NCBI GenBank assembly: GCA_965644265.1
Contig: OZ286459.1
Coordinates: 128,216,001 to 128,280,000 of the forward strand
DNA from: Glycera tridactyla
Lineage: Eukaryota
Direction: 5' to 3'
DNA: 64,000 nucleotides
This document shows, one piece after another, positions 3,506 to 63,841 of the stretch; the stretch's first letter is position 1, and the number at the start of each line of letters is the position of its first letter. The translations under genes were made by a program, and so were the position numbers. Under the pieces are notes generated by a model. That model did not search any database. It was given only the letters and a program-made list of their open reading frames with translations, and had not been told where the DNA came from.

Positions 3506-3556
3506 CTCAAATGTCACAACGTTTTCTTCACCCTCTTCGCCTGCTTCTTCATCTCC
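3506..3556 (-). CDS. Candidate 51-nt exon (GDEEAGEEGEENVVTFE)
   Basis: cacttccatcatag acceptor, GAG|gtagtg donor; phase 0-0; purine-rich exon-like composition against AT-rich flanks. Confidence 0.65.
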
Positions 3557-3737
3557 CTATGATGGAAGTGACAGTATGCACATATGGAGAAATCCATTAG
3601 CTTGAGGAAACTATGCCACACCATCATGCAATAGTATTGAAACTTACATGTGATAACACACGCATACACACACACTCATATTGGTATTAGTGAATATGTT
3701 AACTGTGCAAAGGATTTTTCTGATAAATAAACTGTAC

Positions 3738-62600: not shown

Positions 62601-63841
62601 AGAAGATAGAGATGGACGTACAGAAACCACATCTATATCAAGACTCCATTTTGAAGCGTGGGATTTCTATAATTTCTGGAAGGTCAGAACACAAGAGCTT
62701 TGACTGTTTTGCCTCAGCCCTTCAATCTTATAAGAAAATTGTCTATTCATAAGAAGTAAACAGAATGTTGAATTAATTGTATGAAGGGTAGTCAGACCAA
62801 TAATTGGCTCCAGTGGGAAGGGAATTGTACAAGGACCAACAAGCTCAAGGGTAGGTTTACAAAGGTCAAAGAACTTGAAACATTGATCTTGGAAAAATGC
62901 AAAAACGTCATCAATATCAGGGATTCCCACCAAAGTTAGAACCCCTGAAGTAAAAAATCAAATGGCAGTATGTGTGAGCTGATGGAAAAAGATAATCATG
63001 ATAAGATGGTCCTGTCTGTTCAATTACTAATTAATTGACTTTTATGCTGAATTTGAATGAGAAAGACATCAAGTGCCAGTGACTTCTAAAGTATTCCACC
63101 AGACATTATGGAGTTGAATTCACAAATGCTTTTCAAGTAGCAATAACAATATTCTGCTAGATTCCCCTTTGAAGATGCATTAGCTTTTTGGAACTTGAAA
63201 AACTGCAATGATCACATTGATTTCATAATATGATAATTTGACAATCCAATGATGATGATTAATTAAACACCCATTGATCATTTACATACAGATTAGTGCT
63301 GAATAACAGCGATTTTACCTGTAAATCCACATTAACTGATCGGACAGTACCATGGCAAATTCAAATGAGAAATATTATGTGGATACTGAATTTATGGCTT
63401 CCATGAAATGAAGGAAAACGGTTCTTTGGACAATCTGACATTTTCAAATGTATCCTAACATAATATCAGCATGTGATGGGCGTGAAAATTTATAGTGGAT
63501 TTTTTCCATGACTGTAACTCATTTATGAAAAGGATTATAAAAATAATCTTAATATAGATGATGTCCTGCACTTGACTGCAGAATAAGATGAGAATAAAAT
63601 TGCAGCAGGAGGAAGAACACATCACTGTCAAGATGATACTCTGGTTGCAAAAAGAAGGGAGGAGTGGGTTCAAATGGAAAGAGAAACGACATGGCAGAGG
63701 ATGTATTAAGATATATATGAGAGGATAATTAGATATATTCAAGCAGAACACACTACCAGAGGCAGCATACACGGTCCCTATGTCAAACTTGAATTGGCCA
63801 ACAACGGTTCCAGCACGTAGGATGTTTCGAGAGTGTAATGC
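8481..63841 (-). CDS. OTOF: Otoferlin-like type II ferlin, multi-exon gene, internal portion (both ends outside the window)
   Basis: 20 exons join with consistent splice phases into a 1193-codon open frame. The frame has otoferlin hallmark motifs: [98 protein letters not shown]. FerB runs straight into C2D with no DysF domain, which defines a type II ferlin. Confidence 0.97.
11129..11291 (-). CDS. OTOF: Ferlin exon 19, linker ([20 protein letters not shown]...RVHFNTE)
   Basis: tgtttgtag acceptor, AAG|gtgaga donor; 163 nt, phase 0 to 1; fits between exons 18 and 20. Confidence 0.85.
11505..11564. repeat. Compound microsatellite (ATTG)n-(GT)n
   Basis: Direct reading. Confidence 0.95.
18961..19176 (-). 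CDS. OTOF: Ferlin exon 18 ([10 protein letters not shown]...Gly/Glu-rich...[16 protein letters not shown])
   Basis: gatgtttcag acceptor, AGG|gtaggt donor; 216 nt; DWWSKYFAS ferlin motif. Confidence 0.96.
19263..19400 (-). pseudogene. Tandem duplicate (143-nt period) of the exon-18 acceptor and first 19 codons, with an in-frame TGA
   Basis: The copy reads tgatgtttcag|CCA AAT GAT GGT TGA CCT AAA AAG AAG..., against CCA ATT GAC AGT GGA CCT... in the real exon; 8 differences in 57 coding nt. Confidence 0.85.
19681..19895 (-). CDS. OTOF: Ferlin exon 17, variable linker ([11 protein letters not shown]...[25 protein letters not shown])
   Basis: tctgttactag acceptor, GGG|gtgagt donor; 215 nt; supplies the phase 1 to 0 bridge needed between exons 16 and 18. 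Confidence 0.85.
21726..21773 (-). CDS. Candidate 48-nt cassette exon ([16 protein letters not shown])
   Basis: gatacttcag acceptor preceded by about 175 nt with no AG on the minus strand; TCG|gtgagt donor; phase 1-1 matches the host intron. Confidence 0.75.
24319..24362. repeat. 22-nt perfect tandem duplication
   Basis: tcaggacgtgcacatccaaaac x2. Confidence 0.95.
24955..25123 (-). CDS. OTOF: Ferlin exon 16, C2DE ([25 protein letters not shown]...KQAFKKFL)
   Basis: ttgatttcag acceptor, TAG|gtcagt donor; 169 nt, phase 0 to 1; VDCRxFGR motif. Confidence 0.95.
25819..25856. repeat. (AC)n microsatellite
   Basis: Direct reading. Confidence 0.95.
25938..26099 (-). CDS. OTOF: Ferlin exon 15, C2DE ([13 protein letters not shown]...[15 protein letters not shown])
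   Basis: ccttgcacag acceptor, GTG|gtaagt donor; 162 nt, phase 0-0. Confidence 0.96.
26291..26425 (-). CDS. OTOF: Ferlin exon 14 ([14 protein letters not shown]...[21 protein letters not shown]), GC donor
   Basis: gactttcag acceptor; GAG|gcaagt non-canonical donor, required to join KYRIE to VLFWG; 135 nt. Confidence 0.94.
27674..27843. mobile_element. 170-bp foldback/MITE-like element
   Basis: Perfect 12-bp terminal inverted repeat gacaagtttggc / gccaaacttgtc, extending inward to about 43 bp with 22/31 further matches; no clear target-site duplication. Confidence 0.55.
34253..34414 (-). CDS. OTOF: Ferlin exon 13, end of C2D ([13 protein letters not shown]...[12 protein letters not shown])
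   Basis: ctttccactag acceptor, CAG|gtaaga donor; 162 nt, phase 0-0. Confidence 0.96.
35402..35806. repeat. Near-perfect tandem duplication (208 + 197 nt)
   Basis: The two copies differ by one 11-nt indel (gagaaaaaaca) and one substitution (tagcac/taccac). Confidence 0.95.
35810..36170 (+). mobile_element. Possible highly degenerate LINE (CR1/L2-like) 3-prime fragment
   Basis: Interrupted translation LHWTPLSS...LICY...TFPRNIVTE loosely resembles the LxWxxLxxRR...FY and FFPRTI motifs at the end of LINE ORF2. Confidence 0.25.
36670..36825 (-). mobile_element. Possible short non-autonomous element with a GCGAAGC mini-hairpin end (Helentron/HINE-like)
   Basis: Perfect hairpin caaagtgc-gaa-gcactttg (36804-36822) and a second gcgaagtcaagc motif about 140 nt away; the family assignment is inference. 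Confidence 0.3.
36977..37038. repeat. 26-nt direct repeat, period 36
   Basis: atttgattattgccacctaggaatca x2. Confidence 0.9.
41411..41670 (-). CDS. OTOF: Ferlin exon 12, C2D ([29 protein letters not shown]...IEIFDQDRV)
   Basis: ttctttgcag acceptor, GTT|gtatgt donor; 260 nt, phase 1 to 0; acidic Ca2+-ligand positions are retained. Confidence 0.97.
41808..42000 (-). CDS. OTOF: Ferlin exon 11, FerB ([25 protein letters not shown]...LHYT)
   Basis: tttttcacag acceptor, CAG|gtaaga donor; 193 nt, phase 0 to 1. Confidence 0.96.
42411..42466. repeat. (AC)n microsatellite
   Basis: Direct reading. Confidence 0.95.
42512..42781 (-). CDS. OTOF: Ferlin exon 10, FerA to FerB (DQCGMMAR...[13 protein letters not shown]...KVQTLFLK)
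   Basis: ctgttttag acceptor, AAG|gtaagt donor; 270 nt, phase 0-0. Confidence 0.96.
43987..44305 (-). CDS. OTOF: Ferlin exon 9, FerA region ([12 protein letters not shown]...[13 protein letters not shown]...RLCMREV)
   Basis: ttgacttag acceptor, GTG|gtgagt donor; 319 nt, phase 2 to 0. Confidence 0.96.
45132..45291 (-). CDS. OTOF: Ferlin exon 8 (GNYGNSMDG...acidic insert...PIKPTTRDK)
   Basis: tgttgtcag acceptor, AA|gtatgt donor; 160 nt, phase 1 to 2; GNYGN motif. Confidence 0.94.
45902..46010 (-). CDS. OTOF: Ferlin exon 7 ([36 protein letters not shown])
   Basis: atacttgcag acceptor, ATCG|gtatgt donor; 109 nt, phase 0 to 1. Confidence 0.95.
46095..46283. repeat. Purine-rich compound repeat (GACA/GGAT/GGGA/AGAC)
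   Basis: Direct reading; the plus strand is almost entirely purine, with many GG/GGG runs. Confidence 0.9.
46385..46420 (-). CDS. Candidate 36-nt in-frame exon ([12 protein letters not shown]), or alternative first exon starting at ATG 46402
   Basis: Pyrimidine tract plus taccgcag acceptor; GCA|gtgagt donor; phase 0-0; internal cagcagcATGG Kozak context in frame with exon 7. Confidence 0.6.
46857..47031. mobile_element. About 175-bp MITE-like non-autonomous DNA transposon (Tc1/mariner-type TA flank)
   Basis: ta|cagttgaacctg...caggtttgatgg|tg degenerate terminal inverted repeats; internal repeats of cctgtattaagcaaccacc, with an inverted copy ggtggttgctgaatacaggtt. Confidence 0.65.
47241..47455 (-). 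CDS. OTOF: Ferlin exon 6 ([20 protein letters not shown]...ENCLPVSE)
   Basis: cttcccacag acceptor, GAG|gtaagc donor; 215 nt, phase 1 to 0. Confidence 0.96.
48345..48350 (-). CDS. Candidate 6-nt microexon (GTCATG; adds His-Gly after C2C)
   Basis: tatgtttccag acceptor and ATG|gtaagt donor; frame-preserving in a phase-1 intron. Confidence 0.4.
50285..50471 (-). CDS. OTOF: Ferlin exon 5, second half of C2C ([17 protein letters not shown]...[28 protein letters not shown])
   Basis: ttttttcag acceptor, AAG|gtcggc donor; 187 nt, phase 0 to 1. Confidence 0.96.
51110..51296 (-). CDS. OTOF: Ferlin exon 4, first half of C2C ([14 protein letters not shown]...[15 protein letters not shown])
   Basis: ctcttttag acceptor, AAG|gtacga donor; 187 nt, phase 2 to 0. 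Confidence 0.96.
51687..51727 (-). CDS. OTOF: Ferlin exon 3, FerI ([14 protein letters not shown])
   Basis: tctcttgcag acceptor, GC|gtaagt donor; 41 nt, phase 0 to 2. Confidence 0.94.
52430..52500. repeat. (AC)n microsatellite
   Basis: Direct reading. Confidence 0.95.
52594..52676. repeat. (ATC/GTC)n trinucleotide repeat
   Basis: Direct reading. Confidence 0.95.
53028..53089. repeat. (AC)n microsatellite
   Basis: Direct reading. Confidence 0.95.
53517..53568. repeat. (GT)n microsatellite
   Basis: Direct reading. Confidence 0.95.
54358..54379. repeat. (AT)n microsatellite
   Basis: Direct reading. Confidence 0.9.
56827..56854. repeat. (AT)n microsatellite
   Basis: Direct reading. Confidence 0.9.
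57882..58041. other. Assembly gap (160 N)
   Basis: Run of N. Confidence 1.
59099..59214 (-). CDS. OTOF: Ferlin exon 2, end of C2B and FerI ([39 protein letters not shown])
   Basis: ttttcttcag acceptor, AAG|gtaagt donor; 116 nt, phase 1 to 0. Confidence 0.96.
59359..59515. other. Assembly gap (157 N)
   Basis: Run of N. Confidence 1.
62029..62113 (-). CDS. OTOF: Ferlin exon 1b, homologous alternative of exon 1a ([28 protein letters not shown])
   Basis: Acceptor attcctctag, donor CAG|gtaacc; same length (85 nt) and phases as exon 1a; 13/28 residues identical; no stop codon. Confidence 0.9.
63757..63841 (-). CDS. OTOF: Ferlin exon 1a, C2B loop-3 segment variant A ([28 protein letters not shown])
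   Basis: Acceptor gatttccag, donor G|gtagtg; 85 nt, phase 0 to 1; joins exon 59099-59214 in frame. Confidence 0.95.

Follow-up and report, generated by a model that had tools for sequence, protein, structure and literature searches.

A lophotrochozoan otoferlin-type gene of Glycera tridactyla with a conserved 84-nt cassette exon and six short intronic candidates that are probably decoys for the most part

We analysed a 64,000-nucleotide (nt) stretch of the Glycera tridactyla genome (contig OZ286459.1, positions 128,216,001 to 128,280,000; hereafter the window, numbered from 1), the minus strand of which carries a ferlin gene. An initial annotation had called this gene an invertebrate otoferlin and proposed that, besides a pair of exons for the C2B domain, six short frame-preserving exons (6, 36, 48, 21, 33 and 51 nt) form a combinatorial program of alternative splicing. 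The reading that we consider probable is a different one: the window covers the portion of the gene from C2B to just before C2E, with 20 constitutive exons and one conserved 84-nt cassette, termed E13b, and the six short candidates are mostly decoys.

An otoferlin-type ferlin gene on the minus strand

Long stop-free stretches on the minus strand of the window gave ferlin-like translations. Pfam recognized FerI (2e-13), FerB (1e-21) and C2 (9e-9 and 1e-11) in the exon translations, and one and the same translation matched the solved otoferlin 9qe2_A in the PDB with E=3e-28, compared with 2e-3 for dysferlin. The exons are collinear with full-length otoferlin-like proteins, with FerI, FerB and several C2 domains in ferlin order; the top database relatives are named otoferlin-like, and no DysF Pfam family is listed for them. 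Full-length references were obtained by searching a representative library with exon E9, which returned mostly fragments, and by a word-index search that started from an otoferlin-like protein of a hemichordate. The nearest full-length relative by summed tblastn score was the otoferlin-like protein of the nemertean Tubulanus, followed by those of molluscs and Lingula. A word-index search with the E18 stretch returned one weak relative and no protein from Glycera tridactyla. Because of the Pfam and otoferlin matches, and because the nearest relatives are nemertean, mollusc and brachiopod, homology places the gene among the lophotrochozoan otoferlin-type (type-2) ferlins, its N-terminal and middle part lying in the window. 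The otoferlin call of the initial annotation was thus borne out.

Coding exons were rebuilt with tblastn, a profile hidden Markov model (HMM) of five full-length homologs, and bookkeeping of splice sites and phases. The resulting 21 exons, from 63841 to 8481, join into one open frame of 1213 amino acids (aa) without a stop. The gene runs past both ends of the window: in homologs of 2064 aa, the position of E1 is at about residue 290, and the constitutive exon following E20 ('VYPxELE...') lies beyond the window start, homolog matching having failed to find it in 1-8480. For comparison, orthologous loci (L001 and following) were collected from four related genomes with E6 as query (open reading frame (ORF) fragments, 72-97% identity) and then by contig walking; one of them spans E1 through the exon after E20. 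Each match to the E6 query came from genomic DNA and was limited to E6; none was a transcript fragment of Glycera tridactyla.

31916-31999, minus strand: E13b, 84-nt cassette (phase 0/0, AG/GT flanks, 57 homologs)
63757-63841, minus strand: E1, first C2B exon copy, 85 nt (tblastn and HMM, splice sites; conserved in L001-L003)
62021-62128, minus strand: second C2B exon copy (tblastn from three homologs, P0164, P0161 and P0174)
59099-59214, minus strand: E2, FerI exon (Pfam FerI 2e-13; junctions)
51687-51727, minus strand: E3, constitutive small exon of 41 nt (110 homologs match; AG/GT flanks; conserved in five loci)
51296-51110, minus strand: E4 (for E4 to E7: homology and splice sites; conserved in related loci)
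50471-50285, minus strand: E5
47455-47241, minus strand: E6
46010-45902, minus strand: E7
45291-45132, minus strand: E8 (for E8 to E12: homology and splice sites; conserved)
44305-43987, minus strand: E9
42781-42512, minus strand: E10, FerB
42000-41808, minus strand: E11
41670-41411, minus strand: E12, first half of C2D
34253-34414, minus strand: E13, second half of C2D, ending in ...AAFELLQ (PDB otoferlin residues 893-946, E=1e-16)
26425-26291, minus strand: E14, with a GC donor (for E14 to E16: homology, splice sites, frame)
26099-25938, minus strand: E15
25123-24955, minus strand: E16
19681-19895, minus strand: E17, 215 nt (RNA joints 24955>19895 and 19681>19176 in two runs)
18961-19176, minus strand: E18 (HMM match; acceptor 19176 verified by RNA)
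11153-11291, minus strand: E19 (31 homolog matches, splice sites, frame)
8481-8695, minus strand: E20, ending in SVAQLK (more than 100 homolog matches)
59359-59515, no strand: assembly gap (N run) in intron E1-E2, 145 nt upstream of the E2 acceptor
57882-58041, no strand: assembly gap (N run) in intron E2-E3

The second C2B copy is conserved in two related genomes (L001 3322-3415 and L002 8292-8394), and the exon pair is therefore old. No constitutive coding exon is missing at either assembly gap, since the alignment of E1-E5 to four homologs is gapless; the frame is continuous via splicing. An alternative exon may lie inside a gap, and none of the six short candidates adjoins one.

Three pairs of splice sites would permit in-frame tandem use: the E17 acceptors 19895 and 19784 (111 nt apart), the E14 acceptors 26425 and 26395 (30 nt apart) and the E19 donors 11153 and 11129 (24 nt apart). 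For E17, the RNA joint uses 19895, which rules out 19784 as the acceptor of the model; oysters vary inside their E17 equivalent. The E14 donor reads GCAAGT, with GC in place of GT at 26289-26290 of the minus strand.

A cassette shared across lophotrochozoan phyla

E13b, which is absent from the candidate list of the initial annotation, codes for 28 residues that lie after C2D and before the next C2-like domain. It is matched by 57 of 130 homologs, and motif alignment yields PF[DE][DE]..TPP..RK at the ...FELLQ/L... junction. In its 8-kb host intron E13b is the sole conserved island, and in two related genomes it is intact, open and frame-symmetric with AG/GT flanks (81 nt in L006, 66 nt in L005). 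The annotation of relatives presents it as alternative: it is present in some and absent from other RefSeq isoforms of nine lophotrochozoan species, and in Tubulanus, Lingula, Mizuhopecten and Octopus this segment is exactly what distinguishes the members of isoform pairs at that junction. Nemertean, brachiopod, bivalve, gastropod and cephalopod otoferlins have it in common. The segment is missing from the sampled deuterostome, arthropod and coral sequences, and in 9qe2_A residue 946 passes directly to 948 across the junction.

This distribution points to an exon that is ancient within Lophotrochozoa and did not evolve independently. The initial annotation had suggested that the alternative exons of this gene were independently evolved; for E13b, the strongly supported cassette, its occurrence in several lophotrochozoan phyla contradicts that view. 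By analogy with its relatives, E13b is probably used alternatively in Glycera tridactyla as well, and would be the best-supported case of alternative splicing at sites that relatives also use. Inclusion would place the 28 residues, among them a basic cluster and a TPP motif, between the two domains, where the insert may have a function. Literature searches turned up no description of E13b.

Linker junctions vary in related otoferlins

To place the candidates among known variants, the RefSeq isoform sets of 13 invertebrate species were aligned to the exon junctions of this gene. They included Lingula (X1-X9), Mizuhopecten, Argopecten (up to X16), oysters, Mytilus (up to X14), Biomphalaria, Octopus, Mya, Tubulanus, Ptychodera (up to X35) and Anneissia. 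Variable segments fell at the following places:

after E2: Tubulanus, 20 aa
after E5: scallops, 7 aa
after E13: nine species, the segment being E13b
after E16: scallop 11 aa, oyster 4 aa, Ptychodera 53 aa, Anneissia 16 aa
within E17: oysters
after E18: 7-27 aa in seven sets
after E20: 35-42 aa in Lingula and oysters

The cassette after E20 carries a motif of NKAF followed by acidic residues, which also occurs in scallop, mussel, Mya, octopus and Biomphalaria sequences. When the cassette peptides of relatives (that of Tubulanus after E2, those of scallops after E5 and E16, the 7-27-aa ones after E18 and the NKAF cassette after E20) were searched in the matching introns of the window, no significant match was obtained; E13b alone was significant. 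Splicing hot spots in the linkers of invertebrate otoferlins are thus real and already in public annotation. The initial annotation had supposed that this gene uses the splicing hot spots of ferlin linkers. At the level of the family this holds, and several of the host introns coincide with variable junctions; it does not extend to the six exons themselves.

Six short candidates at chance level

The initial annotation gave the lengths of its six candidates without exact coordinates. We enumerated all stop-free AG..GT segments that keep the phase of their host intron, and five of the six lengths (6, 36, 48, 21 and 51 nt) could be re-derived in this way; the 33-nt candidate is ambiguous.

48345-48350, minus strand: 6-nt candidate (ttccag/GTCATG/gtaagt), intron E5-E6, phase 1; no UGC upstream
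46385-46420, minus strand: 36-nt candidate, intron E6-E7
21726-21773, minus strand: 48-nt candidate, intron E16-E17, phase 1
6585-6605, alternatively 18165-18145, minus strand: 21-nt candidate (DEGDEFL), the former position in the intron after E20
3770-3738 or 9675-9643, minus strand: the two options for the 33-nt candidate
3506-3556, minus strand: 51-nt candidate (GDEEAGEEGEENVVTFE), intron after E20; its start equals that of the initial annotation

All six are free of stops, preserve the frame by their length and are flanked by AG and GT. The introns hold approximately 1,950 stop-free, frame-preserving AG..GT segments of 6-60 nt (164 of 6 nt, 121 of 21 nt, 107 of 33 nt, 87 of 36 nt, 87 of 48 nt and 70 of 51 nt). 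As a control, the antisense strand of the same introns was treated likewise: open frame-preserving segments with both splice scores >=1 were counted at several cut-offs of the score sum.

score sum >=4: 17 sense, 23 antisense
score sum >=6: 7 sense, 3 antisense
score sum >=8: 3 sense, 2 antisense
score sum >=9: 2 sense, 2 antisense

Because the antisense counts equal the sense counts, the match to the phase of the host intron is at chance level and is uninformative. The segments that the initial annotation had listed do exist; as a set they show no excess over the control and are drawn from some 1,950 comparable ones. Its statement that all of them fall in inter-domain linkers was partly upheld. 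The exception is the 6-nt candidate, which would be inserted immediately ahead of a 14-residue segment following a Pfam C2 match (profile position 97 of 104); its site would probably lie in a loop of C2C, not in a linker.

UGC motifs, expected near the acceptors of neural microexons, were counted at -40..-1. There were none for the 6- and 36-nt candidates, three for the 48-nt, two for the 21-nt and one for the 51-nt candidate, against a background of intronic AGs in which 41% have at least one UGC and 1.9% at least three. Enrichment was confined to the 48-nt candidate and one of the 33-nt options.

Conservation likewise separated the candidates from real exons. In a blastn comparison of 64000-19000 with six loci (L001-L006, E<=1e-3), annotated exons matched, including the 41-nt E3, the second C2B copy and E13b, and no intron did. 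Direct intron-to-intron comparison found nothing conserved at the 6-nt or 36-nt candidates; the orthologous E5-E6 introns measure ∼600 nt in L001 and ∼105 nt in L002. Further downstream, comparison with L008 aligned E16, E17, E18 and E20, and nothing at the 48-, 21-, 33- or 51-nt candidates. Altogether, E1-E18, E20 and E13b gave matches in related genomes and E19 a weak one. The initial annotation had named conservation in related genomes as a check on its exons, and by this check no candidate rose above the intron background, while nearly all real exons were conserved.

The dominant transcript skips the 48-nt candidate

Three small runs of one study contain about one-tenth of the words sampled from 41400-51300. 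Contigs from the runs were compared with the 6-kb stretch 19110-25109, which was chosen as holding the best-featured candidate together with the least certain part of the exon model. Runs X2 and X3 each gave one spliced contig (depths 9 and 60) that joins E16, 19895-19681 and E18. The joints, 24955>19895 and 19681>19176, are the same in both contigs; they identify these runs as RNA, verify the E16 donor at 24955 and pass over 21773-21726, the 48-nt candidate. The dominant form therefore lacks this candidate. The contigs reach ∼500-1000 nt past 19110-25109, which must take them across E13/E14 and E20.

The first 40 letters of the X2 contig, at its end at 19111, resemble sequencing adapter (CGCTCTTCCGATCT…), which makes this end an artefact and not a transcript end.

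Weighing the readings

Taken together, these data make it probable that the six short candidates are ordinary intronic decoys, AG..GT pairs that would keep the frame by chance, with the 48-nt candidate as a possible exception. Several points weigh against this reading. The RNA comparison covers the 48-nt candidate alone of the six, and contigs drop rare variants, so that a tissue-restricted inclusion of the 48-nt segment may be compatible with skipping in two bulk runs. The splice-site scores come from crude, hand-made matrices. Lineage-specific exons need not persist at the divergence of the relatives used (72-86% amino-acid identity in E6), and a 6-nt exon without conserved flanks would escape the conservation screen. 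Finally, the 48-nt candidate combines four unusual features.

The last point leads to the alternative that survives best, although we regard it as unlikely: the 48-nt candidate alone would be a real, lineage-specific cassette of low abundance or restricted to certain tissues, derived from a duplicated 3′ end of exon 16 together with its donor. Its acceptor (3.9) and donor (4.6) score strongly, the 175-nt AG-free zone upstream is reached by only 3 of 2967 intronic AGs, and three UGC motifs within 40 nt of the acceptor place it in the top 2%. Moreover, no other of 2161 decoy donors matches the end of E16 as well as do the final nine codons of this candidate, which fits an old partial duplicate of the exon 16 end, and the E16/E17 junction is a hot spot in relatives. 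Such an exon would add a segment after a C2-like domain; variable inserts at this junction are also found in scallops, oysters, a hemichordate and a crinoid. On the other hand, the segment is absent from both spliced contigs, the orthologous L008 intron has no conservation at it, and the eight codons that differ from the E16 end (three synonymous, five not) reveal no clear purifying selection; a degenerate duplicate of the E16 end would look identical. Two more novel readings, which we find equally doubtful, are that the 48-nt segment is a young tissue-restricted exon from the E16-end duplicate and that E13b is an undescribed regulatory insert across Lophotrochozoa. The former, if true, would show a new exon arising at a splicing hot spot of ferlins, and the basic cluster and TPP motif of the latter might tune membrane or partner binding of otoferlin.

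Far less probable is that the acidic 21-nt and 51-nt candidates are diverged pieces of the mollusc/Lingula cassette that lies between 'AQLK' and 'VYPxELE'. That cassette is real, and Lingula and oysters use it alternatively; both candidates are acidic, EGDEF of the 21-nt candidate resembles Lingula EGDDF by eye, and the Mytilus cassette has its top match at the 51-nt candidate. Nevertheless, the cassettes score at or below the means of shuffled sequences, with Mytilus against the 51-nt candidate at the shuffle mean; an NKAF-like motif was not found in 1-8480, and L008 is not conserved at either candidate. The intron after E20 also runs past the window, and the true cassette may sit outside.

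In L008 itself, the equivalent of the intron after E20 holds an open stretch at ∼1474-1530 (minus strand of the locus; …HLFKKMFKRQDSDEWL) with AG and GT flanks, which would measure 73 nt if this AG/GT pair were used. It is faintly like the NKAF-plus-acidic cassette, with a score that is not significant. Used as a guide, this ORF was of no help in locating a cassette in the window.

Least probable of all is the proposal of the initial annotation that most or all six candidates are genuine cell-type-specific cassettes or microexons of a many-isoform program, independent of the vertebrate ferlin exons: four host introns do coincide with variable junctions of relatives (E5/E6, E16/E17, E18/E19 and after E20), the 6-, 21- and 48-nt candidates have splice scores on a par with those of real exons, and a neural microexon program is present in non-vertebrate bilaterians (PMC8797185), yet the six show neither enrichment over the antisense control nor conservation, the 48-nt candidate is skipped in RNA, the E6/E7 junction that would host the 36-nt candidate is invariant in all relatives examined, and none has homology to the cassettes of relatives.

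A by-eye selection of short phase-matching exons from long introns is unreliable, as this case shows: 60 kb of introns yield thousands of them, and the antisense strand an equal number. What the analysis does provide is a clean exon model for an invertebrate otoferlin, with 21 exons and some of its joints checked by RNA, a map of the isoform variation annotated in relatives, and one cassette, E13b, which is shared across several lophotrochozoan phyla and could be tested for an effect on otoferlin function.

Comparison with known ferlins and related loci

The closest counterparts are the RefSeq invertebrate otoferlin-like isoforms, which belong to the same family, vary at the same junctions and include a homologous E13b; they are, however, the product of automated annotation and not a described splicing program. 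Vertebrate OTOF, which is alternatively spliced at exons 6 and 31 and at the exon 47/48 membrane anchors (PMC10394277), resembles the present gene as a multi-C2 ferlin with FerI and FerB whose alternative segments lie outside the core C2 folds, one of them downstream of the C2-like domain that follows C2D. E13b, however, sits at the junction between C2D and the next domain, 946/948 of 9qe2_A, where vertebrate otoferlin has no segment. Dysferlin, with its alternative exons 5a, 17 and 40a (PMC4230592), shares the use of frame-preserving linker cassettes, and 40a precedes the last two C2 domains as does the mollusc/Lingula cassette after E20; unlike otoferlin, it is a type-1 ferlin with DysF domains. 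Drosophila misfire is another invertebrate ferlin with several alternatively spliced isoforms (PMC1853072). As to the eMIC/Srrm3/4 microexons (PMC8797185), the 6- and 21-nt candidates fall within their size class of 3-27 nt, the latter with its two UGC motifs upstream, whereas the 33-, 36-, 48- and 51-nt candidates exceed it. A literature search for 'otoferlin' with 'microexon' returned nothing relevant.

The related loci differ from the window in some details of gene structure. The E9 equivalent is split by an extra intron in three of them (L001 12168-13111, L003 14754-15621 and L002 11132-11677), an intron that is absent here. The E2-E4 region of L002 is apparently intronless, giving a single continuous tblastn match. 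Between E14 and E15 of L006, at 17168-17668, the 3′ end of the E14 equivalent is repeated in tandem as five to six partial copies.

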